Source: Dendrobates tinctorius
Lineage: Eukaryota
Reading direction: 5' to 3'
Assembly: GCF_039654945.1 (NCBI RefSeq)
Contig: NW_027361924.1
Span: 11,036,001-11,100,000, forward strand
DNA length: 64,000 bases
This document shows, piece by piece, positions 2,712-64,000 of this stretch (its first letter is position 1; the number at the start of each line of letters is the position of its first letter). The translations under genes were made by a program, and so were the position numbers. Below the pieces are notes generated by a model. The model ran no database searches, was not told the origin of the DNA, and saw only the letters and a program-made list of their open reading frames with translations.

Positions 2712-2788
2712 TCAGGTCCAGTCCTGCCCCCCATAGTCCGCACTGATGTCGCCCGTGCTGCTGCGGGGTCTCGTCTGCTCCTCACAGT
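2712..2788 (-). CDS. CD19: CD19 probable terminal coding exon
   Basis: aacag| phase 1, CEEQTRPRSSTGDISADYGGQDWT*; AATAAA on the minus strand at 2306-2311. Alternative: previous exon reads through to the stop at 3969. Confidence 0.5.
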
Positions 2789-5700
2789 CTGTTGGTTTCA
2801 TAGGAAATGTAAAAATCTCCATCTTGCAAAAAAGAAACAAAGTGAGAAGAAGCAAGTAAAAAGTGGTACAATGTCTGCAGAAAAAGTGTGAGCATATACA
2901 ATGCCCATATAATACCGCCATACTGTGTCCAAGTACTAGCACCAGTGTGCAATAGCATCTATATCCAATGCCCATATAATACCGCCATATACTAATGCTA
3001 ATCTCATAAAGTGCACAACAGTATCAATATACAACTACCATGTAATACCTCCAAGTACTAGCACCATAGCAACACAGGTGTTAGAACAGTATATGGCGGT
3101 ATTATTCATGTAGTGGCACAGTTGTTATAGCAGTGTATGGCAGTATTATTTGGGTAGTAGCACAGTTAGAGCAGCGTATGGCGGTATTATTTGGGTAGTA
3201 GCACAATTATTAGAGCATTGTATGGCGGTATTATTCGGGTAGACATGGGCTTGGGTAGGCAGTGAGCAGTGTATGGCGGTATTATTCGGGCAGACTTGGG
3301 CTTGGGTGGGCAGTGTATGGCGGTATTATTTGGGTAGACATGCGCTTATGTGGGCAGTGAGCAGTGTATGGCGGTATTATTCGGGTAGGCATGGGTTTGG
3401 GTGGGCAGTGAGCAGTGTATGGCGGTATTATTCGAGCAGACATGGGCTTGGGTGGGCAGTGAGCAGTGTATGGCGGTATTATTCGAGCAGACATGGGCTT
3501 GGGTTGGCAGTGAGCAGTGAATGGCGGTATTCGAGCAGTCATGGGCTTGGGTGGGCAGTGAGCATTGTATGGCGGTATTATTCGGGTAGACTTGGGCTTG
3601 GGTGGGCAGTGTATGGTGGTATTTTTCGGGTAGACATACGCTTATATGAGCAGTGTATGGCGGTATTATTCGGGTAGGCATGGGCTTGGGCAGGCAATGA
3701 GCAGTGTATGGCGGTATTATTCGGGTAGGCATGGGCTTGGGTGGGCAGTGAGCAGTGTATGGCGGTATTCGAGCAGACATGGGCTTGGGTGGGCAGTGAG
3801 CAGTGTATGGCGGTATTATTCGGGCAGACTTGGGCTTGGGTGGGCAGTGAGCAGTGTATGGCGGTATTATTCGGGCAGACTTGGGCTTGGGTGGGCAGTG
3901 AGCAGTGTATGGCGGTATTATTCGGGTAGACATGCGCTTATGTGGGCAGTGAGCAGTGTATGGCGGTATTATTTAGGTGCTACATGGTGAGATTTCCTAA
4001 GCCACATACTTTGTTCCTGCAGCTCCGCGGACACTTTCTGTGGCTGATGGGTAGTGGGGTCCGCCAGATTTGCCGTCCTGCCCTCGGTCTGGTCCTCAGA
4101 GAATTTGTGTGAGGGGCGAAGGACACAGTCTGGTCGGGAGTACAGAGGAGTCTCCATGTTCTCGTAGGAATCTGCATCTGCTATAAGAATGGACATAGCT
4201 GGAGTAGTGGTGATACAGCTGGTATGGGGCGGTAATATTTATTACGTGGGCGGCTGGTTTGATCACAGTATCCCACAGCTCCTGCTGTCTCCTCCCCTTT
4301 TTCTTGCTGACTTCGCCCACCGGCGGTTACCACAGAGCAGTGCATTGTGGGATCTGTGAGGCCAATCTGAGGCAGAGCAGCTCTGTAATACCACATGTCT
4401 GACAGCAGGTGTCGCTACGCTGTGACTGGAGCGATGGTGTCTCACCTTCGTCTGGCGTCGTCCCCTCGTCTGCAGGACCCTCGGCCTTCGTCCGGACACA
4501 GATGGATCCTTTCATGTCTTCATACGACTGGGACCCTGAGACACGAGAAGAACATGGATGAAGTGGCGCCATTCTTATACCACAGCATCGCCCACCCAAG
4601 CCCAAGTCATGCGGGGTCCTGGGCCGCACCTTCCGAGCCGTCTTTAATTTCTTCATTGGTGTTCTCATAGCAGTCGCCATCTAGAAAACAGAAGAGGAGG
4701 CGTCAGCCGTGTCACCGGGACGGAGCCTGGACCTCACCCCGTCCCACTGTCACTGAGACCCATTTCACACACCAATTTTTTGCCGTCAGTCACAATCCGT
4801 TGGCTCGACGGATCCTGCGCCCATAGGCGTCCATTCTAGGAAACGCCGGCCGATTTTTCGACGGAGACAAAAAACGTTCCTCCGTCTGTCGTCTCCGGCC
4901 CAACGGACAAACAATTTTCGACAGATCCGGCGAACGACAGATGAAACGTGCGGCCATCCGCCGTTAATACAAGTCGATGAGAAAAAACCACATCCAGTGG
5001 CGTCAGTCGCAGGATCCGTTTTTTTCAAAATTTGATGGATTGCGACTGATGGCAAAAAACTGATGTGTGAAAGGGGCCGAACAGGTTAATATAAACCGAT
5101 ACACTCACGTTGGTTTTACTTTTTATTTTTTTATTATATTTTTAAACTCGACACTAGTACTCCCCCTAGTGAAAATCCTACACTTAACCCTAGTCCTCGC
5201 CTTCATCAGAGGCCTAACCCCAGTCCTAATCCTAAATCTAGTCCTAACTCTATCCCTAGTCTTAATCCTAACCCTGGTCCTAACACTGTCGTCAGAACGC
5301 TAACCTTAGGCCGGGTTCACATTAGGGGCAATGCGCTGACGGGATCCGTTACATCGCGGCACTAGCGTTATGTAACGGACGCGTTAACGCACTCACTGCC
5401 CGCAATGACAGTAACACATGCCAAAATCGTCACGCATTAGCGATGATGCGTTACTTCATCACCCACCCTCGAACGCGGTCTGCAGCGTTCGGGGGTGCGT
5501 CGGGTCTAGTGCACAGCAAACGGACATGTTCGCTGTGCATAGACCTGTATGGGCTAACGCATGGTAACAAACTGCCACCATGTGTTAGCGCATACCGTTA
5601 GCGCTAGGGGACAAAAGATGTCAAAATTGACATCAGCGTTAGCGCATCCATTTAACAGATCCGTTAAACGGATGCTCCTAACGCAATGTGAACCTAGCCT

Positions 5701-8700
5701 TAGTCCTAACTCTAACATTAATCCTACCCCTGAAACAAACTCTAGTTTTAATCCTAACCTTACATTAGTTTGTGAAAGTATTCACGCCCTTGGCATTTTT
5801 CGGATTTTGCTACCTCACAACCTGGAGGGGTTTTTTTACGGTTTGCATCGGTTCATGTAGAGAACATGCCGACAACTGTGAACATTTGATTTTCTTTTTG
5901 TTGTAAAGCAAATAACAAATAGGACAAAATAACTGAAAACTTCAGTGTGCATAACTATTCACCCCCCTAAAGTGAGTACTTTGTATAATCTCCTTTTGCG
6001 GCTATTACAGCTGTAAGTCCCTTTGGATAAGTGTCTATGAGCTTTCCACATCTTGCCACTGGGATATTTGCCCATTCCTCGAGGCAAAACTGCTCCATCT
6101 CCTTCAAGTTAGATGGTTTCCTCTGGTGAACAGGAATCTTCAAGTCTGACCACAGATTCTCCATTGGATTAAGGTCTGGGCTTGATGAGACCACTCCAAA
6201 ACACATACACGTTTCCCCTTGCACCACTCTAGTGTTGCTTTAACATTTTGCTTTGGGTCATTGTCTTGTTGGAAGGTGAACCTCCATCCCAGTGTCACAT
6301 CACTGACAGACTGAAATAGGTTTTGCTCAAGAATATCCCTGTATATCACACCATCAATCTTCCCATCAACTCGGACCATTTTCCCCGTCCCTGCTGCCGA
6401 AAAACATCCCCATAGTATAATGGTGCCACCACCATGCTTCGCTGTGGGGAGGGTGTTCTTTGGGTAAAGAGTTGTGTTGATTTGGCACCAGACATAGTGT
6501 TTACCTTGGTGGTCAAATAGTTTAATTTTGGTCTCATCTTACCACAGCACCTTCCTCCATACATTTGGGGAGTCTCCCACATGTCTTTTGGCAAACTCAT
6601 AATGAGCCTTCCAATTTTTGTGTATAAGTAAATGCTTTTTCTGCCCTCTCTTCCATAAAGGCCACCTCTATGGCGTGTACAGCTTATTGTGGTCGTACGG
6701 ACAGATACTCTCTGGGACCTCTGCAGCTCCTTCAGGGTTTCTTTTGGTCTCTGTGCTGCCTCTCTGATTAATGCCCTCCTTGCCTGGGCTGAGAGGTTTG
6801 GTAGGCGGCCCTCTCTTGGCAGGTTTGTTGTGGTACCATGTTCTTACCATTTGACGACAATTTATTTGATGGTGCTCTGGGGGATCATCAGAGATTGGGT
6901 TATAATTTATAACCCAACCCTAACTTTTTCTTCTCAACAACTTTGTCCCTGACTTGTTTGGAGATCTCCTTGGTCTTCATGGAATTGTTTGGAGATCTCC
7001 TTGGTATTCATGGTGTGGTTTGGAGATCTCCTTGGTCTTCATGGTGTTGTTTGGAGATCTCCTTGGTCTTCATGGTGGTGTTTGGAGATCTCCTTGGTCT
7101 TTGTGGTGTTGTTAGGAGATCTCCTTTGGCTTCATGGTGTTGTGTGGAGATCTCCTTGGTTTTCATGGTGTTGTTTGGAGATCTCTTTGGTCTTCGTGGC
7201 GTTGTTTGGAGATCCCCTTTGTCTTCATGGTGGTGTTTGGAGCTCTCTTTGGTCTTCGTGGTGTTGTGTGGAGATCTCCTTGATCTTCGTGGTGTTGTTA
7301 GGAGATCTCCTTTGGCTTCATGGTGTTGTGTGGAGATCTCCTTGGTTTTCATGGTGTTGTTTGGAGATCTCTTTGGTCTTCGTGGCGTTGTTTGGAGATC
7401 CCCTTTGTCTTCATGGTGGTGTTTGGAGATCTCTTTGGTCTTCGTGGTGTTGTGTGGAGATCTTGGTCTTCGTGGTGTTGTTAGGAGATCTCCTTTGGCT
7501 TCATGGTGTTGTGTGGAGATCTCCTTGGTCTTCATGGTGTTGTTTGGAGATCTCCTTGGTCTTCATGGTGATGTGTGGAGATCTCTTTGGTTAGTGGTAT
7601 CTCTTGGTAATGGTGTTGCAGCCTCTGTGGCCTTTCAGAAGAGGTAAAGTGTAAATACTGATAGACGTGTGACACAGATTGCACACAGAGGGACGTCCTG
7701 TCACTAAGCATGGGACTTAAGAAGGGAATTGCTTTTAACAGTAGTTTTTAGAGGCTTCATCGGAACAGGGGTGAATACATATGCCCAGGCCAATTTTTAG
7801 TGATTTGATCCCACAAATTTAATTTATGCCTATATTTTTCTCACTTCATCATCTTAGACTATTTAGTGCTGATGTATCACACACTCACATCGGATTACAG
7901 AAATATTTACACACAGGTTGTAATGTAACAAAATAGCCGCTGTACTTCTAACACTATCCGTAGTCAGTACTGTGACCCCAGTCCTAATCCTAAAGCTAGC
8001 TCCAATCACAACCATAGCCCCTGTCCTAATTCTAGTACTAGCCCTAGTCCTAACTTCACTCAGACCCTAACCCCAATCTTAATAATACTCTTAGCTCTAA
8101 CAAAAGTCCTAATCCTAAATATAATCCTAACTTTAACCCTAGTCCTCTTAACCCTAGTCCAAATTCTAGCCCTTGTCTTAATCCTAACCCTGGTCCTAAC
8201 ACTAACTGTTGTCAGAGCGCTAACCTTAGCCCTATCTCTAACTCTAATCCTATCACTAATATTAACCCTAGTCCCAACCCTACCCTAACTCTAACACTAG
8301 TCTTAATCCTAACCCTAGTCCTAACACTATCCCTGACTAAGTCGAGTCCTAAATCTAACGCTAGTCTTAATCCTAACCCTACTTTTAACACTAACTTTGG
8401 TCAGAAACCTAACCACAGTCCTAGCGCTAAACCTAGTCCTAATCCTATCCCTACTCAGAACCCTAACCCCAGTCCTAACTCCAGGACTGTAATATGTAGA
8501 TTATTATATCAGTAGGGATTTCGTATTGTCTTATTTACAGTTCATCCATCAGGTCACCCACCCTCTGTTCTCTCACAAAATTACGTGTGAGAGTGGAGGT
8601 GGGGAGCTGAGAGAGAGCACGGTGCAGCTTCTGCCATCTCAGTGGCTGCCTATGCAGAGCGCAGCAGTCAAGATGAGTTTGTAATTGGTTGCAGAGCTCT

Positions 8701-11700
8701 GCATAGCAAAGCTCACCTCATTATACTGAATGTTGCTGACAAAGCAGAGAGCAGCAACCAAAGACAAACTCCTCTCCACTGCTGCACTCTGCATAGGCCC
8801 TAACCTGGATGTCAGACCATCCCTAGCTGCCTTACTTATTTAATATAGACCTCCAGGGGGAGGCACACGACAAAAGAAGGGACCCCCATAGGTGACCCCA
8901 GATTTCCTGCCCATCACCGAGCTCACATTACCTATGGAATCCTCATGGTCGCCCCGATCCTTGGTGGGGTCCTCGTAGCAGCCACTTGCTGGTGAGAGAG
9001 GGTATTACATGTGTATTTTTGAGGGGGCGAAAGCAATGAAGAAGAGTGGAGAAAGGAGCAAAAATCATCAATAAAACGTTCTCACCATCGGACGCCTGAT
9101 CCCCTCCTTCGGCCATCGGCTCCAAATAGGAATCACCGCCTGGAAATGACATCATAAAGCAATTAAAGGGGAAGTCTGGGGAGCCGAGCGCGTCAGAGAG
9201 CGGGGCTGCTGAGTATGTCGCTCACAGAGGTCACTGACGACAAGCAGAGGTGCGGAAAATAGTTTGGAATTAAAATTGTGCTGGAAAGCTGCGGAACTTT
9301 TGCAGCGCTCACCGTCCCTTTAATGCATCCGGTTCTGGTAATGGTTTCTAACTGAACTCTGGAGACGATCAGAGAAATGTTTATGAGGCGAAGAAATTGG
9401 GGAAGCGTGACACAAAAACAAGAGAAAAAAATGTCATTTCCTCTTCTGATCTGACTGTTCGGGCTGGACGGCGCCCAAATGACTGATGAAATGCAAGTTA
9501 CTGATACTGGGGGGAGACACCGAGAAATGGACGATAAGGGGATCCATGGTCTCATAAATGACCCCAGACATGGAGACAACTGAGTGGATGGATCCCATGG
9601 AACAGAGATGGAGACTGAGGGGAGCACGACACAACTGGGGCCTGGAGTACGAGGCATGTGCTTCACTGTCATGGTGGGGCAAGAAGGGGCACAGAGAAGC
9701 CCCTCAGCCTTCCCCGCAGGATATTAGATACAAGAACATGGCAGCACACCCTTCTTCCCACCTGGACCTCTGCCATTTGTCCACCATTCACCAAGTCTCT
9801 CATCAGTCATTCCTTATCTGACTCCGCACTCGGCCCCACTAGAGAGCCCCTTTTACCTGACCCCCTCATAACCAGACGATGGAGAGCAACTCCTGGACCC
9901 CCAGGGACTTTACCATTACCAGATTACTGCCCTGGACCCCCCGCAACTTTAACATTACAAGGTCACTGCCCTGGACCCCCAGCGACTATTCCATTACCAA
10001 ATCACTGCCCTGGACCCCCTGCGACTTTACCATTACCAAATCACTGCCCTGGACCCCCCCGCAACTTTAACATTACAAGGTCACTGCCCTGGACCCCCGG
10101 AGGCTTTACTATTACCAGATCACTGCCCTGGATCTCTAGAGCTTTCCTGAGTTACTATTTAGGCATTGTATTGCAATGTTATAGCGATCGTAAATCAGTT
10201 TTTTTAGGGGCCTTGATGGCATTATTATTTGGGCACCATGTGGAGGTATGATTGTATGTGGTATGGGTACTATTAAGGCTTATATATATATGTAGAAGGT
10301 ATGTATTGAAATCACATTATACATATTGGTATGATGAAAATGACCCAATAATGAGGACCCCCATGTTACTGCTCTCAGAATGACATTTTCTATGTAACCG
10401 TCTGTTAGCTGTGATGTCCATTTATCTAACGTAATCTGCTCAATTTAGCATGAAGCAGACAATGTCTAAAAGGCCTGAAGAACTGAACAGGAGGAGACCA
10501 GAGGTGAGGCCTGAAGAACTGAACAGGAGGAGACCAGAAGTGAGGCCTGAAAAACTCAACAGGAGGAGACCAGAGGTGAGGCCTGAAGAACTGAACAGGA
10601 GGAGACCAGAGGTGAGGCCTGAAGAACTCAACAGGAGGAGACCAGAGGTGAGGCCTGAAGAACTCAACAGGAGGAGACCAGAGGTGAGGCCTGAAGAACT
10701 GAACAGGAGGAGACCAGAGGTGAGGCCTGAAGAACTGAACAGGAGGAGACCAGAGGTGAGGCCTGAAGAACTGAACAGGAGGAGACCAGAGGTGAGGCCT
10801 GAAGAACTGAGCAGGAGGAGACCAGAGGTGAGGCCTGAAGAACTGAACAGGAGGAGACCAGAGGTGAGGCCTGAAGAACTGAACAGGAGGAGACCAGAGG
10901 TGAGGCCTGAAGAACTGAGCAGGAGGAGACCAGAGGTGAGGCCTGAAGAACTGAACAGGAGAAGACCAGAGGTGAGGCCTGAAGAACCAGACAGGTGGAG
11001 ACCAGAGGTGAGGCCTGAAGAACTGAACAGGAGAAGACCAGAGGTGAGGCCTGAAGAACCAGACAGGTGGAGACCAGAGGTGAGGCCTGAAGAACTGAAC
11101 AGGAGGAGACCAGAGGTGAGGCCTCAAGAACAAGACAGGAGGAGACTAGAGGTGAGGTGCTCTGTAGAGCTCTTAGTAACCCATCTCCTTCTGCTCAGGG
11201 GTTAGAGCGCAACCCAGGATCCCGGACACATAATGAGACCGCGCCGCACTCACCCAGAGACAGGAAGGAGCTCTTGTCCGAATAACAATCGTCACCAACA
11301 ACTTTAGATGGAGACACGTTCTGGTAGGTGAAGTCCTGATCCTTGTGGGCGACGTCTGATCGTGCTGGCACAAAGAATAAAAAGATGAAGGCAATTATTA
11401 GTATTGTTGGTGTCATCTTCATAGTCACAAAGAAAAAGAGGATGGGAAATAGAAACTGGGAAAATACAAAAAAGAAAAATAGGAAGGAAGGAAAAAAGGA
11501 GAAAACGAACACAAGAAAAAAAAGGAAAATACAAAGAAGGTAAAAAGCAGAATAAGAAGATCAGTAATAAAAAAGGGAAAATATAAGGAAGGAAAAATGG
11601 AGAAAAAGAAAGATGGTAAATAAAAAAGAGGAAAATTCAAAGAAAGAAAAAAGATAAAAACAAGATGGGAAATATAAAAGTGAAAACATAAGGAAGCAAA

Positions 11701-14700
11701 AAAATGGAGAAAAAGAAGATGAGAAATAAAAACGAAAAAATGTCAGGAAGGAAAAGAGAAGAAAAAGAGGAAGATGGAAAATAAAAAAAGGAAAATATGA
11801 AGAAGGATAAAAAGGAGAATAACAAATAGGAAAATCAAAAAGGAAAATACAAAAAGAAAACGAAGAGAAAAAAAGAAGAAAATATATAAAGATGGAAAAA
11901 AGGGAAAGAAATAAGTCTGGAAATAAAAAAGGAGAAAACAAAGAAGGAAAAATGGGAGAAAAACAAGATGAGAAAAAAAGGAAAATGCAAAGAAAAGAAG
12001 AAATAAAATAAAAAAAAAAAACATGAAATATATAGAAGGAAAAAAGGGAGAAGAGAACGAGGGGGGATTGGGAGCAGATGTGGGGTCTCCCAGCTTGTGG
12101 CGGTACCTGTCTGGGGGCTGATGGAGTCTGTGTAGAGGTTCCTGGCGGTGGAGCTTATCTTAAAGAAACTGATGAGGAGAGAACGTTACTATCTGGGTGA
12201 TAGACAAACCCGCTGACATCACAGAGAGAGGACGTGTTCCATAGGTGGCGCCGTACCAGGGGCACAATTCGTTGCCCCCTCCTCTGTGTCCGGTGCACCT
12301 CACAGTGGCCGTCCTGCCCCCACACAGTAATAGAAGCTCAAGATTTTTATTACAGGGGAAAGGAAATAAAGAGAGATCTGGAGATGGTGGACGCAGCGGC
12401 ACAGCTGATGGCTGCGGGGTCTGGTACGTGGCAGGGGCACAGCTGATGGCTGCGGGGTCTCGACCATGGCAGGGGCACAGCTGATGACTGCAGGGTCTCG
12501 TACATGGCAGGGGCACAGCTGATGGCTGCGGGGTCTCGTACGTGGCAGGGGTACAGTTGATTGCTGCAGGGTCTCGTACGTGGAGCGGCACAGCTGATGG
12601 CTGCGGGGTCTCGTATGTGGCAGGGGCACAGCTGATGGCTGCGGGGTCTCGTACGTGGCAGGGGCACAGCTGATGGCTGCGAGGTCTCGTACGTGGCAGG
12701 GGCACAACTGATGGTTGCGGGGTCTTGTACGTGGCAGGGGCACAGCTGATGGCTGCGGGGTCTCGTACGTGGCAGCGGCACAGCTGATGGCTGCGGGGTC
12801 TCGTACGTGGCAGGGGCACAGCTGATGGCTGTGGGTCTCGTACGTGGCAGCGGCACAGCTGATGGCTGCGGGGTCTTGTACGTGGCAGGGGCACAGCTGA
12901 TGGCTGCGGGTCTCGTACGTGGCAGGGGCACAGCTGATGGCTGCGGGGTCTTGTACGTGGCAGGGGCACAGCTGATGGCTGCGGGTCTTGTACGTGGCAG
13001 GGGCACAGCTGATGGCTGCGGGGTCTTGTATGTGGCAGGGGCACAGCTGATGGCTGCGGGGTCTCGTACATGGCAGGGGCACAACTGATGGTTGTGGGGT
13101 CTCGTATGTGGCAGGGGCACAGCTGATGGCTGCGGGTCTCGTACGTGGCAGGGGCACAGCTGATGGCTGCGGGTCTCGTACGTGGCAGGGGCACAGCTGA
13201 TGGCTGCGGGTCTCGTATGTGGCAGGGGCACAGCTGATGGTTCCAGGGTCTCGTACATGGCAGGGGCACAGCTGATGGCTGCGGGGTCTCGTACATGGCA
13301 GCGGCACAGCTGATGGCTGCGGGGTCTTGTACGTGGCAGGGGCACAGCTGATGGCTGCGGGGTCTTGTATGTGGCAGCGGCACAGCTGATGGCTGCGGGT
13401 CTCGTACGTGGCAGGGGCACAGCTGATGGCTGCGGGTCTCGTACGTGGCAGGGGCACAACTGATAGCTGTGGGTCTCGTACGTGGCAGGGGCACAGCTGA
13501 TGGCTGCGGGGTCTCGTACATGGCAGGGGCACAGCTGATGGCTGCGGGTCTTGTACGTGGCAGGGGCACAGCTGATGGCTGCGGGGTCTCGTACGTGGCA
13601 GGGGCACAGCTGATGGCTGCGGGGTCTTGTATGTGGCAGGGGCACAGCTGATGGATGCGGGGTCTTGCATGTGGCAGCGGCACAGCTGATGGCTGCGGGG
13701 TCTTGTATGTGGCAGGGGCACAGCTGATGGATGCGGGGTCTTGTATGTGGCAGGGGCACTAACCTGCTCTTGGTGCGTCTCCTCACTCTCCTTCCTGTAA
13801 TTAGACATGGAGTATAATGGTCACTCGGATTTCCTTGGGTTCTTAGCGGTAAATCTGACTCTTTGTGAATCGCCACCATTACTAAGCACATTTGTCATGT
13901 CGGAGCCCAGGAGAGCTGAGTGACAACTTTTCTGGGTAATTTGGCAGCCATATTGGTTGTCACAAAAGCAAATCATTCATAATTCTGAACAGCATTTCTT
14001 AGGCGATGTTCACACTGAGGTTTTTTTAGCGGTTTTGTTTTTAAGCAAATTGTCGTCAAAAGAAACTCTTGGAAAACGCTTCTTATTCATTTCTATGGGA
14101 ATCCTCTTCTCTGTTCAGATGAGAAGGTTTTGAGTTGTTTTTTTTTACCTGAAGGGATGTTAAAAAAATAAAAGTTCAGGTCACTTCTGGGAAGTGGGAT
14201 CTGATGGAATCCGCTCCAAAATGGGCGCTGTCCAATCAGAAGGCTGCAGAAAAAAATAACAAAACAAAACTTTTCTGGAAATGAAAAATTCTTCCAAAAA
14301 TTCCATAAAAAAAAAAAGCGCTTAAAAAACGTGTCATTTTTAAGCGCCTCGAAAAACCTCCGTGTGAACATGGCCTTAGAATACGCGACAACACTGATCA
14401 CATTCATCTGACGCAGACTTGTTACAAGACAACGCTCCGACACACTGCAACGAACCCTGCACTTTTGCAAGCAAGGCACGATGGAGATCGGTTTTGAAGC
14501 CCGCGAGCGCAGACATTGTGACAACCTGCAGAGACTTGGAAAATGGGGAAGAATTGAAGCACAAACTCTACAAGAAAGTGACAGAACGTTTGTGGGTAAT
14601 GTGACACGCACTGCGTCTTATGCTTACGAAGCCGCCCGCGAGCAGCAGGCAGAGCAGCGCAGAGGACGACGCCACCGCCACGATCATCCAGTATCGCTCC

Positions 14701-17700
14701 TTCAGGAACAGCTGCCATCCTGCCAGGAGGAAACAAGGCACAAGTCAGCGAGCTGCTGGAGTCTCTACCGTTGTATCCCATATATATGGTTTATGGGAGT
14801 CACCAAATCAGGCCTCCCTCACGGTGCTCCGGTCAGACCCCCACAGCCATCCCCTGATCTCACCTGTCGCGTTGCCGTGCGGAGGCGATCCCCGGCATGT
14901 AGCGTTTAACACCTTTACCATACTGCTATTATGGCAGCAGTCACCCCCAGAATCCTGGTCAATAGTGGAGGTGATGACGATCGATGGCCCTTTCCTGATC
15001 ACCTCGACGTTCATCTGAGGCCCCGCTCTGTGCACCATCGCCATCACCTCGTCACCTTTGGACCACTGCACCCTGGTCCAGGTCCTCGGGGCGCTGCAGG
15101 CGATCCGCTGCTCCACCACATCATCCAGCTCGTTATCTGTGGGGAAGAAGGAAGAGTCGTGGTGAGGAGAAAGTGCCGGGGCCAGGAGTCCGGGACATCA
15201 ACAATGGAAGCGACGGCATTACCGAAGAGGCTGTCATCACCAGGCAACTGGGCCAAAGACCCCCACATCTTATGGACCACAGCCCCCCACTAGGCCCACC
15301 ATCACTGCCCTGACAACTTTATTTACCATAATAAGAACAATAAGAAGCTCCAATATCATCAAATAAATCTAATTTCAGGCTCCACACACTGAGGGACCAC
15401 CAAGCACAGAGATATCGGCAGGAGCATCCCACCAGATGCAGTGTATGGGGGCCTCCGAAACTCCCCCGACAGGCGGTGTCAGGGGCAAGAAGGACGAATA
15501 GCTCAACATCCGATCATTCTGTTGTCATGGAGGGTCCCCCCCCTTCCCCCGTTAGAGAAGTCTCCAGAGGATAAAGGAATCTGGAGGAGGACAGAGGAAT
15601 CTGGAGGAGGACAGAGGGGTCTGGAGGAGGACAGAGGGGTCTGGAGGAGGACAGAGGGGTCTGGAGGGGACAGGGGAGTCTGGAGGAGGACAGAGGGGTC
15701 TGGAGGAGGACAGAGGGTTCTGGAGGGGACAGAGGGATCTGCAGAGGACAGAGGGGTCTGGAGGGGACAGAGGAGTCTGGAGGACAGAGGGGTCTGGAGG
15801 AGGACAGAGGGGTCTACAGAGGGGTCTGGAGGAGGACAGAGGAGTCTGGAGGAGGACAGAGGAGTCTGGAGGAGGACAGAGGGGTCTGGAGGGGACAAGG
15901 GAGTCTGGAGGAGGACAGAGGAGTCTGGAGGAGGACAGAGGGGTCTGGAGGAGGACATAGGGGTCTGGAGGGGACAGGGGAGTCTGGAGGAGGACAGGAG
16001 TCTAGAGGAGGACAGAGGTGTCTGGAGGGAACAGAGGAGTCTGGAGGAGGACAGAGGAGTCTAGCAGAGGATAGAGGGGTCTGGAGGGGGACAGGGGAGT
16101 CTGGAGGAGGACAGAGGAATCTGGAGGAGGACAGAGGGGTCTGGAGGGGACAGGGGAGTCTGGAGAAGGACAGAGGAGTCTGGAGGAGGACAGAGGGGTC
16201 TGGAGGGGAAGGGGAGTCTGGAGGAGGACAGAGGAATCTGGAGGAGGACAGAGGGGTCTGGAGGGGACAGGGGAGTCTGGAGGAGGACAGAGGGCTCTGG
16301 AGGGGACAGAGGGCTCTGGAGGAGGGCAGAGGGGTCTGGAGGAGGACAGAGGGGTCTGGAGGGGACAGAGGGATCTGCAGAGGACAGAGGAGTCTGGAGG
16401 GGACAGAGAAGTCTGGAGGACAGAGGGGTCTGGAGGAGGACAGAGGGGTCTGGAGGGGACAGAGGGATCTGCAGAGGACAGAGGGGTCTGGAGGAGGACT
16501 GAGGAGTCTGGAGGAGGACAGCGGAATCTGGAGGAGGACAGAGGGGTCTGGAGGGGATGGAGGGATCTTGAGAGGACAGAGGGGTCTGGAGGGGACAGAG
16601 GAGTCTGGAGGGGACAGAGGAGTCTGGAGGGGACAGAGGAGTCTGGAGGGGACAGAGGGGTCTGGAGGAGGACAGAGGAATCTGGAGGAGGACAGAGGGG
16701 ACTGGTGGGGACAGAGAGGTCTGGAGGGTACAGAGGGATCTGGAGGAAGACAAAGGAGTCTGGAGGAGACAGAGGGCTCTGGAGGGGACTGAGGAGTCTG
16801 GAGGGGACAGAGGGGTCTGGAGGGGGACAGCGGGGTCTGGAGGGGACAGAGGGGTCTGGAGAGGACAGAGGGGTCTGGAGGAAGACAAAGGAGTCTGGAG
16901 GGGACAGAGGGGTCTGGAGGAAGACAAATGAGTCTGGAGGGGACAGAGGGGTCTGGAGGGGAAATGTTGCCGAATTTTAAATATCTATTCTATTATTTGT
17001 AAACACTATTTTTCAGTGATTACTCCGTTCATACTACACCCACACACACAAATTATACACCATTTGAAAGGTAAACTTGCCCCCTTCAGCAAGAAAATAG
17101 CCAAACAAACCACACATCCACGATTTGATCACAAAATACAGTTTAAACATTAATTTTCATAAACCTGCAGTAAGGAAAAATGACCTGCAGGTGGCACCAA
17201 ACTACCCCAAAGCACACTACCACAAAGCTTCTTACAGACATCACAAACAAATCCAAACATTTGCTCTGGGAGCTTTCCAGCTTGCCGACCTGCTTGCCCT
17301 GCCTATTTTAGCCTAATTGGAGGATTGCACACTTCACTGCAGGTGAATCACATATGCAAACACATTTGTAAACATGCACTGCTTTTTCGCTGATTACTTC
17401 ACCCCACCACACACATGATACACCATTTGAAAGGTAAACTTCTTCCCTTCAGCAAGAAAAGAGCCAAACAAACCACACATCCACTATTTTATCACTAAAT
17501 ACAATTTAAACATTAATTTTCATAAACCTGCAGAAAGACACAATGACCTGCAGGTGGCACCTCAACCGAAAGACATTTTTTGGGCCTCTACTTATCAAAC
17601 CAATTTATTGTATTACCAATCTACATATATAAATACCTGTCTGTGTTCATCAGCTCATGAAATACATTTACATTTGACCAACTTGCTTTTTCTGAAATTG

Positions 17701-18425
17701 CCTGCGCCCCTAACGACCAACGTGCAAAAATTTCACACGGGCCAAGCTAGTATATATATAACACGAGAACCTGATTTAATCACTTGGTCACCTTCTGAAG
17801 ACGCTCTCCTTGAATTCTCCTAGCCCTTTATTGCTGCTTATGTTGAGTAGTTGGACAGATCTGCTTATGATTTTATGGTGGTTGTCCATTCACGATACTG
17901 GGGCAGAGCTGCAATACCAGACACAGCCTGAGGGCAGTGGTGGTGCTGTTTAAGAGGTGGTAGTTGTGCCGAGGTCGCTTCCCATGGCGGTCAGGGGAAT
18001 TATTACCGCCTGGAGTCCTACCTGACAGGTGAGCATCGCGGGGAGCATCGTCCACGTTGCAGGAGTAATTGCTGGACGTGTTGTCAGAAGCGAGCCGTAC
18101 AGTCAGGACGTTGGTATCTACCATCAGGATGATGGGAGTCATCCCCAGCACCAGCCACGAGTCGTTGCTGCGCTCCTCCATCTGCAGCTTCAGCACCAGC
18201 GGGACGGGAGCGAAGGAGTAAAGTCCGCAGGGCAGAAAGGTGGAACCTGAAAGAGACGGGAACAGATCGACAAGAGGCTTCGAGTATTGGGCTTTTCTGT
18301 AGGGATCATCACTGGTAGATTTGGACACATTTCTTACCTTCTGCAGGAACCGTGATAATCCCACTGTAATCTGGATTGTCGGCTGAGCAGGTGATCCCCA
18401 GGTAGAGGACGAGGAGAAGCAGCAT
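2712..18425 (-). CDS. CD19: B-lymphocyte antigen CD19 orthologue, 12 coding exons, 445 aa
   Basis: join(18425-18338,18246-18022,15136-14864,14719-14612,13794-13764,12168-12107,11364-11254,9139-9086,4680-4630,4535-4446,4177-4010,2788-2712)=1338 nt, all GT-AG and in phase; signal peptide, Ig-like exons, TM, tail with GSQSYEDM and DADSYENM; head-to-head with RABEP2 as in mammals. Confidence 0.85.
3090..3975. repeat. ~51-bp minisatellite
   Basis: Unit gcagtgagcagtgtatggcggtattattcgggtagacatgggcttgggtgg; inverted partial copies at ~2905-2990. Confidence 0.9.
4010..4177 (-). CDS. CD19: CD19 cytoplasmic exon (DADSYENM)
   Basis: tagcag|, DADSYENMETPLYSR..., YxxM motif. Confidence 0.85.
4446..4535 (-). 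CDS. CD19: CD19 cytoplasmic exon (GSQSYEDM)
   Basis: GSQSYEDMKGSICVRTKAEGPADEGTTPDE, AG/GT flanked. Confidence 0.9.
4630..4680 (-). CDS. CD19: CD19 cytoplasmic exon (DGDCYENTNEE)
   Basis: 51-bp phase 1-1 exon with YEN motif. Confidence 0.8.
5309..5699. mobile_element. PIF/Harbinger-type MITE
   Basis: TIR ggccgggttcacatt / aatgtgaacctagcc; TTA TSD on both sides. Confidence 0.8.
5763..7937 (-). mobile_element. Decayed Tc1/mariner transposon
   Basis: Frameshifted transposase pieces (FQQDNDPK, SPDLNPMENLW) at ~5967-6890; TA-flanked left terminus; right end approximate. Confidence 0.85.
6955..7590. repeat. 31-bp minisatellite inside Tc1
   Basis: tttggagatctccttggtcttcatggtgttg x ~20. Confidence 0.9.
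9086..9139 (-). CDS. CD19: CD19 cytoplasmic exon (GGDSYLEPM)
   Basis: ttccag|...|gtgaga, 54 bp, phase 1-1. Confidence 0.75.
9890..10135. repeat. 39-bp minisatellite (~6 copies)
   Basis: ccctggacccccngcgactttaccattaccaaatcactg. Confidence 0.85.
10470..11158. repeat. 36-bp minisatellite (~19 copies)
   Basis: gaggcctgaagaactgaacaggaggagaccagaggt. Confidence 0.95.
11254..11364 (-). CDS. CD19: CD19 cytoplasmic exon (FTYQNV)
   Basis: ARSDVAHKDQDFTYQNVSPSKVVGDDCYSDKSSFLSL, strong acceptor, gtgagt donor. Confidence 0.8.
11430..12060. repeat. A/G-rich low-complexity tract
   Basis: Nearly pure purine on the + strand. Confidence 0.85.
12107..12168 (-). CDS. CD19: CD19 juxtamembrane exon (FFKISS...NLYTD)
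   Basis: Phase 2-1 exon resembling mammalian RFFKVT...NQYGN. Confidence 0.8.
12390..13760. repeat. 37-38-bp minisatellite (~36 copies)
   Basis: gcaggggcacagctgatggctgcggggtctcgtacgtg. Confidence 0.95.
13764..13794 (-). CDS. CD19: CD19 polybasic stop-transfer exon
   Basis: RRRVRRRTKS, 31 bp, phase 1-2. Confidence 0.75.
14002..14375. mobile_element. PIF/Harbinger-type MITE
   Basis: TIR ggcgatgttcacac / gtgtgaacatggcc; TTA TSD. Confidence 0.8.
14612..14719 (-). CDS. CD19: CD19 transmembrane exon
   Basis: GWQLFLKERYWMIVAVASSSALLCLLLAGGFVSIRR, 108 bp. Confidence 0.85.
14864..15136 (-). CDS. CD19: CD19 membrane-proximal Ig-like exon
   Basis: 273 bp, phase 1-1; IAC...VQW...DSGGDCC pattern, N-glycosylation sequons. 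Confidence 0.8.
15560..16962. repeat. 18-21-bp GA-rich minisatellite
   Basis: ctggaggaggacagagggt variants. Confidence 0.95.
18022..18246 (-). CDS. CD19: CD19 N-terminal Ig-like exon
   Basis: 225 bp, phase 1-1; GSTFLPC...W...NYSC. Confidence 0.8.
18338..18425 (-). CDS. CD19: CD19 exon 1 (signal peptide)
   Basis: gccaccATG Kozak, MLLLLVLYLGITCSA..., 88 nt, gtaag donor. Confidence 0.85.
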
Positions 18426-18518
18426 GGTGGCCCCAGAACTGACAGTGAGTAACTGATGGCACCGCTCAGCGAGCCAGAAACACAGAGTCACAGGAGCAGA
18501 AAATTCTCAACCACTGGG

Positions 18519-18528
18519 TCCCCTGGGA
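18519..18528. promoter_or_regulatory. EBF1 site in CD19 promoter
   Basis: TCCCCTGGGA matches TCCCNNGGGA, ~95 bp upstream of the ATG. Confidence 0.65.
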
Positions 18529-18869
18529 GGAGCGGCTGCACCTGCAGGGTCGGCATACGGGGGCGCATGTGGCTGCAGCAAGAACTAAGGGCGTCCGTAA
18601 AAGTGTGAAGATCTCTCATGTGTCAGATTCTCAGCAAAAAACGAAACGAGAACTTCTGGGAAGTTTATTCAAATCTAAAGAACAAGGCGCATAACAGGAA
18701 CAAGACATGATAATAATAATCCTGAGCTGCAGATCTCACCCCGGTCACCGAGTGCTAAAGTGTCAGCGTATAGGGTAGTTATCAATGCTGAGGTCACAAT
18801 AAAATATAACATATATAGATAGCACAGGATCCAGCAATCACAACAGGCAATGTCCCAGCTACGTACTCC

Positions 18870-19703: not shown

Positions 19704-21058
19704 TGTCACCACTAGGGGGGGCTCCCTATATATTGAGATACATGATGAGATCCTTCTTGTCTGCAGTCACCACTAGGGGGAGCTCCCTGTATACAGAGAT
19801 ACATGATAATATCCTGTCTGCAGCCACCACTAGAGGGAGCTCCCTGTATACAGAGATACATGATAATATCCTGTCTGCAGCCACCACTAGGAGGAGCTCC
19901 CTGTATAGAGATACATGATAAGATCCTGTCTGCAGTCACCACTAGGGGGAGCTCCCTGTATACAGAGATACATGATAAGATCCTGTCTGCAGCCACCACT
20001 AGGGGGAGCTCCCTGTATACAGAGATACATGGTAAGATCCTGTCTGCAGCCACCACTAGGGAGAGCTCCCTGTATACAAAGATACATGATAAGATCCTGT
20101 CTGCAGTGACCACTAGGGGGAGCTCCCTGTATACAGAGATACATGATAAGATCCTGTCTTCAGCCACCACTATAGGGAGCTCCCTGTATACAGAGATACA
20201 TGATATGATTCTGTCTGCAGTCACCACTAGGGGGAGCTCCCTGTATACAGAGATACATGATAAGATCCTGTCTGCAGTCACCACTAGGGGGAACTCCCTA
20301 TATACAGAGATACATGATAAGATCCTGTCTGCACTCACCACTAGGGGGAGCTCCCTGTATACAGAGATACATGATAAGATCCTGTCTACAGCCACCACTA
20401 GGGGGAGCTCCCTGTATACAGAGATACATGATAAGATCCTGTCTACAGCCACCACTAGGGGGAGCTCCCTGTATACAGAGATGCATGATAAGATCCTGTC
20501 TGCAGTCACCACTAGAGGGAGCTCCCGGTATACAGAGATACAGGATAAGATCCTGTCTGCAGCCACCACTAGGGGGAGCTCCCTGTATACAGAGATACAG
20601 GATAAGATCCTGTCTGCAGCCACCACTAGGGGGAACTCCATGTATACAGAGATACATGATACGATCCTGTCTGCAGCCACCACTAGGGGGAGCTCCCTGT
20701 ATACAGAGATACATGATAAGATCCTGTCTGCAGCCACCACTAGGGGGAGCTCCCTGTATACAGAGATACATGATAAAATCCTGTCTGCAGTCACCACTAG
20801 GGGGAGCTCCCTGTATACAGAGATACAGGATAAGATCCTGTCTGCAGCCACCACTAGGGGGAGCTCCCTGTATACAGAGATACATGATAAGATTCTGTCT
20901 GCAGCCACCACTAGGGGGAGCTCCCTGTATACAGAGATACACGATAAGATCCTGTCACCAGCCACCACTAGGGGGAGCTCCCTGTATACAGAGATACACG
21001 ATAAGATCCTGTCACCAGCCACCACTAGGGGGAGCTCCCTGTATACAGAGATACATAA
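19704..21058 (+). repeat. 57-bp minisatellite (~24 copies), each with a CTCF motif
   Basis: ctgcagccaCCACTAGGGGGAGCtccctgtatacagagatacatgataagatcctgt. Confidence 0.95.
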
Positions 21059-21944
21059 GATTTAGCATTAACCCTGTGTGTGCCAGTATGGAGCTGGTTG
21101 CTGTAGACTGTGAGTGCTGGGCTGAGAGCAGTGGGGCGTGGAGGGTGTTTCTCTCGCCTGCTGGTCGCACACGGCTGCATCCTGTTTGTCGGTCTCACAT
21201 AGGGAGGATATGTAGTTTTTTGCCTTCTTGCTGCGGGTCTCAGTTATTGTAGGAAATGCCATAAAACCCGACTGGACCGCACATGAAGCCAGAGCACAAC
21301 ATACAGCTCTGGCAAAAATGAAGAGCCCCCTGCACAGTTGTATAAAATCCGCTTCTCTCCATGTCTGACAGCCTTTTCATTCCAGTGTCAGTTGAATTCC
21401 AACCAGAGTACACTTCATTCTACTTAATGTGCTTCTGATTAGGTGATCACCTGAACCAAATCTTATTTAACGAAGGAAAGTATAAAAAACCTGCTGTGGT
21501 GTTCACAATCCTCCTGCAATAGGCCAAGCTGGATGGCAAAACAAGTGCTAGTAATATCCCAAAAGTGATAGGAATGAAAAAATAAATCTTAACCATGCCA
21601 AAGGAGCTGAAAAGAAAAGTCTTGAGTGAGGAAAAGAAGGGCTCAGTTCTGGCTTTACTAGCAGAGGGATACAGTGAGCGTCATGTTGCCTACATCCTTA
21701 AACTTTCTGAGACTGCAATCCATTACAACAAGGTCAAACAGCAGATATTGGGGACAACAAAGCTACAGACCGGCAGAGGGTGAAAACGACTCTCCACTGA
21801 CCGGGATGACCATCAAATGTCACTCAGCAACCGCAGGATGACATCAAGTGACCTACAAAAGGAATGGCAAATTGCAGCTGGGGTGAAGTGCACGGCAAGA
21901 ACAGTTCATAACAGGCTCCTAGAGGCAGGGCTCAAGTCATGTAA

Positions 21945-22280
21945 GGATATGTGCCCACGTAGCGTTTTTCAAGCGTTTTTTTTCTGAGCAGAAATGCATG
22001 CCCTTGTCAGGGAAAACGCATGCGCTTTTTGACACGCATTTTTTATGCGATTGTCAAGCGTTTTGACATGCATTTTGCGTTTTCCTATGAGTTTTTGCGA
22101 TTCCGCACAATGAATGAACATGCTGCGTTTTTTTCCGCTATGCATTTCCGCACCATTAGCACAACATGTGCGTTTTCCATTCTGTTACATTAGATGCTTT
22201 TCTTAAGCGTTTCTGCAGCAGAAAACCTTGTCTAAAAGCGCTGCAGAAACATTTAAAAAGTGCAAAGTGGGCACACAGCC
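21945..22280. mobile_element. Harbinger-type MITE in Tc1 transposase
   Basis: TIR ggatatgtgcccac / gtgggcacacagcc; TAA TSD. Confidence 0.75.
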
Positions 22281-22744
22281 TAAAGCTAGAAAAAAGCCTT
22301 TCATCAATGAGAAGCAAAGGAGAGCCAGGCTGAAGTTTGTCTAAGACCATAAGGATTGGACCGTAGAGGACTGGAGTAAGGTGATCTTCTCTGATGAGTC
22401 TAATTTTCAGCTTTGGCCCACACCTGGTCATCTAATGGTTAGACGGAGACCTGGAGAGGCGTACAAGCCACAGTGTGTTGCACCCACTGTGACATTTGGT
22501 GGAGGATCGGTGATGATCTGGGGATGCTTCAGCAAGGCTGGAATTGGGCAGGTTAATCTTTGCGAAGGACGTAAGAAAAAAGCCGCATACAAGGTTATCC
22601 TGGAAAAACAGCTGATTCCTTCTGCTCAGGCAATGTTCCCCAACTCTGAGGACTGGTTTTTCCAGCAGGACAATGCGCCATGCCACATGGCTAGGTCAAT
22701 CAATGTGTGGATGAAGGACCACCACATCAAATCCCTGTCATGGC

Positions 22745-25700
22745 CAGGGGCATATCTAGGAGGCGGCAGCCGGGGCAGTTGCCCCGGGCGCAGCTGGCAG
22801 GGAGCGTAGTCGGGCCGCCTAATGCAGCGGTCCGCAGTGTCCTCCCTGGCGGCTGTGTTCTGCCGCTCCTCCAGCCTGAGAGTCGGCGGTTCTCTGTGTC
22901 GGCTGTCAAGCTGACAGCTGGCGCAAAGAAGGTGCGCGTGCCAGCTCCCAGGGAACAATTGTACTGGCGTCTATACAGACGCCAGAACAACTGAAGCTCT
23001 GACCGCCGGACCAGAGCGACATCAGCAGCGTGATCAGGTCATGTGATCACGCAGCTGACGTCACTCCCCGGCGCCCAGAGCGAACGCTGGTGGTAAGTGT
23101 GCTCCACTGTGGAGCTGAAGACACCGAAGATGGGGGGTGTTAATGTAGGGAAGGGGGTTAATGAGTGGGAAAGGGGGTTAATGTGTTTGGGGGGTTAATG
23201 AGTGGGGATGGGGGGTTAATGAGTGAGGATGGGGGTTAATGTGTGTGGGGGGTTAATGAGGGGATGGGGGTTAATTTGTGGGAGGGTTAATGTGTGTGAG
23301 GGGGTTAATGAGTGGGGATGGGGGTTAATGTGTGTGGGAGGTTAATGAGTGGGGATGGGGGTTAATGTGTGTGGGGGGATTAATGAGTGGGGATGGGGGT
23401 TAATGTGTGTGGGGGTTAATGAGTGGGGATGGGGGTTAATGTGTGGGGGTTAATGAGTGGGGATGGGGGTTAATGTGTGGGGGTTAATGAGTGGGGATGG
23501 GGGTTAATGAGTGGGGGGGTTAATGTGTGTGGGGGGTTAATGAGTGGGGATGGGGGTTAATGTGTGGGGGGTTAAAGAGTGGGGATGGGGGATACTTAAT
23601 GTGTGGGGGTATTTGGAGTGGGGATGGGGTTAATGTGTGGGGGGATTTGGGAGTGGGGTTGGGGGGTTATTTAATGTGTGGGGGGATTTGGAGTGGGGTT
23701 GGGGGGTTATTTAATGTGTGTGGGGATTTGGAGTGGGGATGGGGGGTTATTTAATGTGTGTTGGGATTTGGAGTGGGGTTGGGGGGTTATTTAATGTGTG
23801 GGGGGATTTGGAGTAGGGTTGGGGGGTTATTTAATGTGTGGGGGGATTTGGAGTGGGATGGGGGGTTATTTAATGTGTGGGGGGATTTGGAGTGGGGATG
23901 GGAGGTTATTTAATGTGTGTGAGGGTTTTGGAGTGGGGATGGGGAATTTAATGTGTGTGGGGGGATTTGGAGTGGGGATGTGGGGTTATTTAATGTGTGT
24001 GAGGGATGGGGGATTTAATGTGTGTGGGGAGATTTGAGGACACAAAATGAAGAGTATGTATGAGGAAACAGTATGGGGGATACGGTGCAGACAGTATGGG
24101 GAGCAAACGGGTGAATGTATGTGGACACAGTATGGGGAGTCGGGGATATGTGTGAGCAGACAGTATAGAGAGTGAGGGGGTAAATATATGAGGAGACAGT
24201 ATGGAGGGGAATAGTGTGAGGCGACAGTATATTGCAGATATTTTTATTCAGGAGCATTATAATGACACTTCTATCTTTAAGGGCATCGTGTGGAGATTTG
24301 CTGCAGAAGACCGGAGAAGATGGAAGTCTGCAGAGACAGCTGTGGATGAGAAAACTCATCATGGGGTCTGGACAAGAAGAAGAAAAGGAGACCGACTGCA
24401 GAGACGACGTCATATATAAGGTACCTGGATGTAAATATTATTAGTGATACTTATTCTCATGTTTTTATTTGTTAGGAACATTAAAGGGGTTGTCCAGGTT
24501 TGTGCTGAGTCTGCAGACATTCTATGTGACTGCAGACTTCTGAATTTTCACAGTGTGCACAGCACGCTGTCAGGATTCTCTCGTGCCGGTAATTTACATA
24601 CATGCGGTCACATGCTGACTAGACATGTGTGGCCTCAATGAAAATGAACAGAGCGAGGCCGGGCATGTCTAGTCGGAATGTGGCCAGAAGTATACAAATC
24701 ACATGCTTGTACGGACATGACTGTACATCGGCAAGGGAGAATCCTAAATGTGTGCAGTGCATTCACTGTGAGAATTCAGAAGCTGCAATGTCAGGATTCA
24801 GCTCTGCAGGTTCCAGTAGTCATCACATAGACCAGGGGTGGGGAACATCCGGCCCGCTGGCCGTATACGGCCCGCCATATCATTTGATCAGGCCCGCAGC
24901 CGCTCCAGAGCCACGATTGGGTACCTTGCTGCAGGAGCCAGAGGAGCAGAGGAGCACTCTTGCTCTGCTTCCTAGCCCCGCCCGCTGGATACCGCGCACT
25001 GACACGTGCACGCACTGATGGGGACTGAGCACACCCCGCTGGACCACAGCGGCCCCCGCGCACTGATACTAATGAAGAGGACGAGTAACCACGCGCCAGA
25101 GTGTGAGCTGCGCTGGACTGGTCTGCGGCCTGCCTCCCCGGCCTGCCTTCTTCATCACCCCGGTTACCCGTGCGGTGGTGACCGTGTGCTGCTGTGTGTG
25201 TGGTGCGGGGCCTGGGGGCCATCCAGGAGTCACTGTGTTCAACACCAGGTCAGTATGTGCTGCCTAATGGGGACCTGTGCTGCCTAATGGGGACCTGTGC
25301 TGCCTAATGGGGACCTGTGCTGCCTAATGGGGACATTTTCCTGCCTATTGGGGACCTATGCTGCCTAATGGGGACCTGTGCTGCCTATTGGGGACCTGTG
25401 CTGCCTATTAGGGACATTTTCCTGCCTATTGGGGACAGTTACCTACCTAATGGGGACCTGTGCTGCCTAACAGTGACATTTACCTGCCTATTGGGGACCT
25501 CAGAGATTTAGTTTTCGTCACCTCAGCTGCATGATTTGTGGCTGCTGGACAGCCTGAATACATGTGAGGAATGTCTGTTTGTTAAGGAATCATCACATGT
25601 ATTCAGGCTGTCCAGCAGCCATAAATCATGCAGCTGAGGCGACGAAAACTAAATCTCCGAGCGCGCCAAAATAATCAGAGGACACCTGAGCATGCTCGGA

Positions 25701-31642: not shown

Positions 31643-31689
31643 CCGATGCTGCACACTCACCACCAGCTGCATTTCTGCACCTGCTGCTC

Positions 31690-32460
31690 GCACCTCATAT
31701 AAAGGACCGGTCACCTCTGACGGAAATTGCCGAACTCTCTGAGCTGAGCCGGCGGAAAGTCCCGAGCTGCCTCCAAGACAATAAGAGGCGAGAGGAGCCC
31801 GAGCGCTGCCGGAAATCACCGAAGTCCCTGCCGTCCTCAGAGCCGAGCGGTGGCGGAGATTCCCGAGCGGATACGGAAACGTGTCCCATGCGGATGCGGA
31901 TTTGCTCGGGAGGAAAGTTGGAGGTTTGGGAAGGAAAGTAGAAGCGGAGGAGCCCCCCGGAGAGGAGAAGCCCCCCCGGAGAGGAGAAGCCCCCCCGGAG
32001 AGGAGAAGCCCCCCCGGAGAGGAGAAGCCCCCCCGGAGAGGAGAAGCCCCCCGGAGAGGAGAAGCCCCCGGAGAGGAGAACAAGGTAAGTGCAGGGTCTG
32101 CCTGTGTTCTGCAGAGCTGCCGGTACAGTGTGTTGTGTGCGCCATAGTGAATGCAGCTGCATGCTGGGAGTTGTAGTCCCTCTCGTCTATGCAGGAAAGT
32201 CTGTGTGCATTAATTCACATAATATATAAAAGTAATATCCAGGCCAGAGCGGCGAGCCCAGGAGCTGACGATCTAATGACGCCAGCAGTGCGGGGGTTAA
32301 TGTAATTAATGTGACAAGGGGGAGGGGTTTGCGGATTAATTTTGCATAATTAATGATTCCGATCACACGGAGTGAAGACGCTGCAGGGACAAGATGGCGG
32401 GAAAACCCGATCCAGACCGTGCGAGTGTGACCGCGGATTCATTGATGATTTTGCTGGTAA
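31690..32460 (+). promoter_or_regulatory. RABEP2 CpG-rich promoter and putative 5' exon(s)
   Basis: TATAAA 31698, several CGGAA, 19-bp repeat 31952-32078, donor aag|gtaagt ~32083, ZNF143 motif 32159-32179, CAAGATGGCGG 32390-32400. Confidence 0.6.
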
Positions 32461-63910: not shown

Positions 63911-64000
63911 GTATGTCTGCTTACCCTCTTGTCTATGGTCTATGTTAGGGGGCATCGCCACGTAGCATCGCCGATGCCAATAGCTCTTGTCAATTTATAC

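Follow-up and report, generated by a model that had tools for sequence, protein, structure and literature searches.

The DNA analysed here, referred to as the window, is a stretch of 64,000 nucleotides (nt) from the poison frog Dendrobates tinctorius (NCBI RefSeq assembly GCF_039654945.1, contig NW_027361924.1), free of N and numbered from its first letter. Its minus strand carries a multi-exon gene whose coding span runs from 18425 down to 2782, with a tectonic-family gene downstream on the same strand and a probable rabaptin-family gene lying divergently on the other side. The multi-exon gene is intact, spliced and transcribed, and we identify it as the CD19 orthologue of D. tinctorius, with a probability of about 0.93, because RefSeq identity, a profile search that returned only CD19, the ranking of structural matches and the gene neighbourhood agree. 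It is not a discovery, as the gene already bears the name CD19 in public annotation, both for this species and for more than 25 further amphibians. With this analysis, the exons, motifs and promoter of a candidate poison-frog B-cell marker have exact coordinates.

Exons, product and transcripts

Exon borders were taken from stop-to-stop frames and direct reading of the sequence, guided by tblastn with frog CD19 proteins. The spliced model obtained in this way has 13 coding exons, every one with canonical AG/GT borders and matching phases. From the start codon onwards they are as follows (Ig, immunoglobulin; TM, transmembrane; the evidence is given in brackets):

18338-18425, minus: coding exon 1, with the start context GCCACC-ATG (ATG at 18425), the signal peptide and the beginning of Ig-like domain 1; phase 1 at its 3' end (matched by frog CD19 proteins in tblastn)
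18022-18246, minus: coding exon 2, Ig-like domain 1 (Cys36...Cys92), phase 1-1 (reading and tblastn; no Pfam recognition)
14864-15136, minus: coding exon 3, Ig-like domain 2, phase 1-1 (phmmer, best match a frog CD19)
14612-14719, minus: coding exon 4, TM segment and beginning of the basic stop-transfer sequence, donor GTGCGT, phase 1 (tblastn; AlphaFold helix 205-234)
13764-13794, minus: coding exon 5, a 31-nt micro-exon encoding RRVRRRTKS (residues present in the RefSeq protein and in other frog CD19)
12107-12168, minus: coding exon 6, FFKISSTARNLYTDSISPQT, with the FFK juxtamembrane motif common to mammals (tblastn and alignment)
11254-11364, minus: coding exon 7, the YQNV exon, with acceptor 11364 (RefSeq X2, adding ARS) or 11355 (which fits other frogs), 9 nt apart (tblastn and RefSeq comparison)
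9086-9139, minus: coding exon 8, GDSYLEP, aligning with mammalian EAYEEP (tblastn and alignment)
8932-8988, minus: coding exon 9, SGCYEDP, aligning with mammalian GYENP (alignment; 3' end seen as a loose end of RNA contigs at 4683)
4630-4680, minus: coding exon 10, DGDCYENTNEE, aligning with mammalian ESYENEDEE (alignment; junction to exon 11 in four runs)
4446-4535, minus: coding exon 11, GSQSYEDM, the first YxxM, Tyr codon 4524-4522 (alignment; both flanking junctions in four runs)
4010-4180, minus: coding exon 12, DADSYENM, the second YxxM, Tyr codon 4166-4164, with acceptors 4177 or 4180 (RefSeq and RNA contigs)
2782-2822, minus: coding exon 13, the translated portion of the terminal exon, N-GDFYISYETNRL followed by the stop codon at 2784-2782 (tblastn; loose contig ends at 4010 in four runs)

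The predicted product has 450 amino acids with the acceptors 11355 and 4180, or 449-452 according to the choice made at the two alternative acceptors. It is a type-I membrane protein with a signal peptide, two divergent Ig-like exons, a TM segment followed by the basic stop-transfer sequence RRRRRVRRR, and an acidic, tyrosine-rich tail. The short phase-1 exons of the tail carry one tyrosine motif apiece, in the order NLY, YQNV, YLEP, YEDP, YEN, GSQSYEDM and DADSYENM, and the chain ends with the terminal NGDFYISYETNRL. An earlier, first-pass annotation of this DNA had proposed 12 exons encoding a type-I protein of 445 residues, with a lower border at 2712. A minus-strand, multi-exon gene for a type-I membrane protein is indeed present, but the exons number 13, the product is longer and the stop codon lies upstream of that border. 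The shortfall probably arose from a missed short exon, most likely the 31-nt one at 13794-13764. In the last exon a different frame had probably been followed; the stop at 2712 belongs to such a frame and lies within the 3' untranslated region, which continues below 2782 with AATAAA at 2311 and 2123. The tail motifs that it had listed could all be placed, the two YxxM contexts at the tyrosine codons given above and YQN (11355-11254), YLEP (9139-9086) and YEN (4680-4630) in phase-1 exons, together with the YEDP exon at 8988-8932.

Three candidate features were tried and rejected during model building. A further exon proposed around 15318-15212, in the interval that separates the Ig exons, was phase-incompatible or met an early stop in both frames, and frog homologues lack residues there. 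The donor GTAAGC at 14627 in the TM exon was dropped for GTGCGT at 14611, because splicing to the micro-exon, and with it the RefSeq protein, is obtained with GTGCGT alone. A last exon ending at 2712 was set aside, as the conserved C terminus and the loose ends of RNA contigs take the acceptor at 2822 and the stop at 2784-2782.

Transcript evidence came from the assembled contigs of four public runs (two studies; identities coded), mapped on 3975-5060; the long tandem arrays at 15580-16959, 12393-13759 and 3213-3973 lie outside this RNA-mapped region. Spliced minus-strand contigs were found in all four runs, with joints 4630|4535 and 4446|4177 (4446|4180 in one run). The acceptors at 4177 and 4180 form a tandem pair 3 nt apart; one run used 4180 and the other three 4177, and both acceptors of the pair are therefore in use. 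Past 4010, the contig letters of all four runs are those of the start of the terminal exon at 2822, and past 4680 they are those of the end of the exon at 8932. Counting these loose ends into exons 13 and 9, four tail splice junctions are confirmed by contigs. One of these spliced contigs is 1610 nt long, and a 1467-nt assembled contig encodes the same exon chain. An absence of spliced transcripts, which had been named beforehand as grounds for doubt, is not what these runs contain.

Identity as CD19

To place the product in a family, we compared it with named proteins. The spliced model was identical, at 449 of 449 aligned residues, to the 452-residue NCBI protein 'B-lymphocyte antigen CD19 isoform X2 [Dendrobates tinctorius]', the differences being limited to the two acceptors: use of 11364 adds ARS and use of 4177 drops one alanine. 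The gene is therefore the same as the RefSeq CD19 gene, annotated already in this species, and it does not escape annotation pipelines. In a phmmer search of the second Ig exon (query 14865-15137, minus) against 1.84 billion representative proteins, the best match was a 452-residue frog CD19 (E 5.3e-24). When that protein served as the query of a word search, 22 amphibian proteins came back. The name 'B-lymphocyte antigen CD19' (one 'CD19-like'; NCBI/UniRef) was attached to 18 of them, among these Xenopus tropicalis XP_002941751.3 and two caecilians.

We then searched 5.8 billion proteins, at E <= 0.001, with a profile of 15 amphibian sequences. Of the 36 proteins retrieved, all that had a functional name were CD19, and five were unnamed or 'uncharacterized'; no named family other than CD19 appeared at this threshold. 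The matches included Gekko japonicus (3e-43) and eight mammals (1e-36 to 4e-26), and the spliced model itself matched the profile at 3.9e-192. When the model was compared by blastp with eight mammalian CD19 proteins, E ranged from 1.7e-12 to 1.5e-5. The proposal of a CD19 orthologue in the first-pass annotation agrees with all four lines of evidence named at the outset. Its premise that CD19 is hard to detect outside mammals was overstated, as the gene is annotated in many amphibians and a gecko. A 2022 review places the origin of CD19 at amphibians and describes it as missing from fishes (PMC9141580). In cross-species single-cell work CD19 is still regarded as a marker found only in mammals, and one such paper has it emerge with mouse (PMC10770119). 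We found no functional study in the literature that we searched on amphibian CD19.

The likeness to mammalian CD19 follows the order of the tail. In alignment with the gecko and mammalian proteins, the frog sequence shows, from the membrane outward, FFK, YxN, YLEP/YEEP, YEDP/YENP, YEN/YEN, GSQSYEDM/GSQSYEDM and DADSYENM/DADSYENM. The contexts GSQSYEDM and DADSYENM are invariant in 15 of 15 amphibian sequences of the profile and conserved in the aligned gecko and mammals.

The fold of the ectodomain was compared separately. An AlphaFold2 model of residues 1-235, built from a 17-sequence alignment, had a predicted local distance difference test score (pLDDT) of 77.9, with beta strands over 24-186 and a helix at 205-234. 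In an exhaustive structural alignment of this model against 48,161 PDB representatives, human CD19 took ranks 1 and 2: 7jic_A (Z 5.4, root-mean-square deviation 3.9, 121 residues, model residues 29-178) and 7urv_C (Z 5.2, 117 residues aligned), both with a modest Z, below 8.

Anuran features, promoter block and the readings weighed

The TM segment starts at about residue 200 in this protein and in most anurans, as against 286-327 in Xenopus, caecilians, gecko and mammals. The exon 3 region of the poison frog has no counterpart of the long inter-domain segment found in mammalian, caecilian, gecko and Xenopus CD19. Because the ectodomain is shorter, partnership with CD81 or CD21 may differ. Pfam found no match in the Ig exons or the whole protein, and no Ig domain in the short neobatrachian CD19 forms. 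At the other end of the protein, the motif NGDFY[ILMFV][SP][YF] of the terminal micro-exon is kept in nearly all anuran CD19, and the NGDFYxSY terminus is absent from Xenopus, caecilians, gecko and mammals. To our knowledge, the terminal NGDFY motif matches no immunoreceptor tyrosine-based inhibitory motif, immunoreceptor tyrosine-based switch motif or hemi-immunoreceptor tyrosine-based activation motif.

The first-pass annotation had noted an EBF1 site some 95 bp upstream of the gene, and the palindrome TCCCCTGGGA is found at 18519-18528, 94 nt from the ATG at 18425. We compared the promoter of Dendrobates with those of the CD19 loci of Spea, Pseudophryne, Mantella, Engystomops, Discoglossus and Lithobates, and three elements recur:

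18539-18544, minus: E-box CAGGTG, the first element of the block; all seven anurans have CAGGTG or CAGCTG between -98 and -122 relative to the ATG
18519-18528, minus: EBF-type palindrome TCCCAGGGGA (TCCCNNGGGA), 94 nt before the ATG; each of the six other anurans has it at -82 to -104, either exact or with one mismatch
18502-18508, minus: GAGAA[G/T]T element, about 20 nt downstream of the EBF site; present in all seven anurans and invariant in a four-species alignment

In 7/7 anurans an E-box, an EBF-like palindrome and GAGAAKT follow one another in this order, 62-122 nt ahead of the ATG, with near-constant spacing, the E-box and the palindrome being 11-18 nt apart, start to start. The palindrome is exact in three species and has one mismatch in four. 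Its mere count carries no weight, because TCCCNNGGGA occurs once in the window against 2.15 occurrences expected by chance; its position and its conservation across species do carry weight. The block is probably functional, since neutral sequence is unlikely to remain alignable at these divergences. The GAGAA[G/T]T element may resemble the region of the mammalian PAX5 site. The conservation of all three elements across anurans fits control by E2A and EBF1; by analogy with mammalian CD19, PAX5 would probably act as well. Mammalian precedent exists for each of these factors: E2A, EBF1 and PAX5 act at the CD19 locus (PMC4312928; PMC13095835), and Cd19 is a recorded EBF1 target according to the same two sources, the first of which cites Gisler et al. 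1999. As to a conserved EBF1 control, the position of the site is kept across anurans, and EBF1 would be expected to bind it in frogs.

These features suggest how the gene may work. Transcription would probably be driven by a promoter that lacks a TATA box and lies some 100 nt ahead of the ATG. By analogy with mammalian CD19, Src-family kinases would phosphorylate the tail tyrosines once the antigen receptor is engaged; PI3K p85 would bind through its SH2 domains to the two phosphorylated YxxM sites, Vav/PLCgamma would dock at the YxEP-type site, and this docking would lower the threshold of B-cell activation. Both B-lineage expression and PI3K recruitment of frog CD19 are thus predicted from its mammalian counterpart. 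It is also possible, at somewhat less than even odds, that anuran CD19 is a distinct co-receptor variant, defined by a compact ectodomain, a terminal micro-exon with the di-tyrosine motif NGDFYxSY(E/Q)xxx and the conserved E-box/EBF/GAGAAKT promoter block. If so, the block would have E2A and EBF1 act directly at the promoter, whereas in mouse an upstream enhancer is described as their main site. The compact anuran ectodomain, the anuran-wide NGDFYxSY micro-exon and the conserved promoter block are possibly new, on a small scale, being undescribed in the literature searched.

Several observations weigh against the identification as CD19 or against the model behind it. The junctions of exons 1-8, including that of the 31-nt micro-exon, are predicted from RefSeq identity, homology and the 1467-nt contig. 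A phmmer search of PDB sequences with a single frog CD19 did not find human CD19, and Foldseek gave no match to the AlphaFold2 model in PDB at E <= 0.001. With Z below 8, we regard the fold likeness to human CD19 as modest, and as supportive rather than decisive. Compared with that of mammals, Xenopus, caecilians and gecko, the ectodomain is short by about 90-130 residues. CD21 is apparently missing in Xenopus, according to a review (PMC9141580). Within 3 kb upstream of exon 2 in Eleutherodactylus coqui, no promoter block was seen, and exon 1 was not located.

One alternative is that the gene, although truly orthologous to CD19, has changed its role, so that it is not restricted to B cells or signals differently through NGDFYxSY and the compact ectodomain. 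The terminal micro-exon motif, held by nearly all anurans and by neither Xenopus, caecilians, gecko nor mammals, would fit such a change, as would the short ectodomain common to most anurans. However, the mammalian signalling tyrosine contexts are all kept, and are invariant in amphibians, and the promoter motifs for B-lineage factors are conserved over the sampled anuran range; we therefore consider a shifted role unlikely.

Alternatively, the protein might be a different Ig-superfamily adaptor or co-receptor that acquired its YxxM motifs by convergence or shares them through distant paralogy, the NCBI name 'CD19' having spread by annotation transfer. Such a protein could lack an Ig domain detectable by Pfam, have very low ectodomain identity to mammalian CD19 with most of the blastp signal in the tail, and be without the 90-130 or so extra ectodomain residues of other tetrapod CD19, all of which is the case here. 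Against this, the profile search yielded no other family at its threshold, six tail motifs and FFK align with mammals in the same order, and the top two structural matches are both human CD19 and span both Ig-like halves. The rabaptin neighbour also agrees with the human gene order RABEP2-CD19 at 16p11.2. Taken together, these data make a different family very improbable. A decaying or unexpressed gene copy is refuted, in spite of introns full of minisatellites and a Tc1/mariner remnant, by a frame open over 13 exons, by the spliced contigs of four runs and by a protein identical to the RefSeq product.

Neighbouring genes and comparison with known CD19 proteins

Around the CD19 orthologue, two further genes were recognized, the second of them a probable one:

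1268-1438, minus: an exon near the start of the coding region of a tectonic-family (TCTN) gene, which follows CD19 directly on the same strand (Pfam DUF1619_N, E 1e-16, 61.9 bits, cut-off 22)
35003-37416, plus: exons encoding coiled coils, from a rabaptin-family gene (RABEP2 is likely) in divergent orientation to CD19 (sub-threshold Pfam Rab5-bind, E 0.0017)

A tectonic gene also lies downstream of CD19 in Spea and Eleutherodactylus (E. coqui). In Spea, a gene with a Rab5-bind domain stands head-to-head with CD19 at a distance of 2.8 kb. A head-to-head rabaptin gene in the window is probable. Searched against PDB, one rabaptin-like exon had the RABEP1 chains 1x79_B and 4n3y_B as its two best matches, at weak E of 0.069 and 0.26; in the ESM Atlas a rabaptin-like exon met only generic coiled-coil families; a second rabaptin-like exon matched generic coiled coils in PDB. 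For RABEP2 head-to-head with CD19, as first proposed, the matches within the window are weak and do not separate RABEP1 from RABEP2; the arrangement in Spea is consistent with it.

Minisatellites crowd the introns and flanks of CD19, at 1-1195, 3213-3973, 6954-7591, 10471-11157, 12393-13759, 15580-16959 and 19707-21056, with units of 64, 51, 31, 36, 38, 20/39 and 57 nt and 15 to 71 copies each. A decayed remnant of a Tc1/mariner-type transposase lies in CD19 intron 9 (5970-6843, minus) and a second one in the intergenic or rabaptin region (21586-22806, plus); both were recognized from sub-threshold DDE_3 and HTH_Tnp_Tc3_2 matches. The stretch 26800-31700 is GC-rich (GC 0.58-0.66), with a GC skew of -0.4 to -0.55 and repeated units, and is probably inside an intron of the plus-strand rabaptin-like gene. 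Near the end of the window, an open frame at 63568-63945 (plus) has a P-loop, GHGKSSF, and a sub-threshold Pfam match to interferon-inducible GTPase (IIGP; E 0.0015); another immune gene may begin here, at the window edge.

An annotated, transcribed frog orthologue of CD19 is of practical value to amphibian immunology, for example in work on chytrid disease. The comparison with other vertebrates indicates that the CD19/PI3K docking module arose before amphibians and amniotes separated. Over long blastp alignments with mammalian CD19, about 22-25% of residues are identical, and there are further differences: the frog ectodomain is about 90 residues shorter, the FYEND motif is missing, the ILY that follows YEDM in mammals is SIC in the frog, and the frog has the additional C-terminal NGDFYISYETNRL micro-exon. 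Downstream of the gene, the frog has a tectonic gene, in contrast to what is presumably NFATC2IP in human. Nevertheless, the two share type-I topology, FFK, ordered acidic tyrosine motifs ending in GSQSYEDM and DADSYENM, one tyrosine motif per short phase-1 exon and, probably, a rabaptin gene head-to-head, and the two-lobed Ig-like ectodomain of human CD19 (7JIC, 7URV) is the best structural match, at a modest Z, to that of the frog. Among amphibians, Xenopus and caecilian CD19 differ from the Dendrobates protein in having a longer ectodomain, with the TM segment starting at 295-327 as compared with 204, and in lacking the NGDFYxSY C terminus. They nonetheless belong to the same family and carry the same tail motifs, with 34% identity over 399 alignment columns for Xenopus tropicalis (XP_002941751.3) and 28-29% identity for the caecilians.

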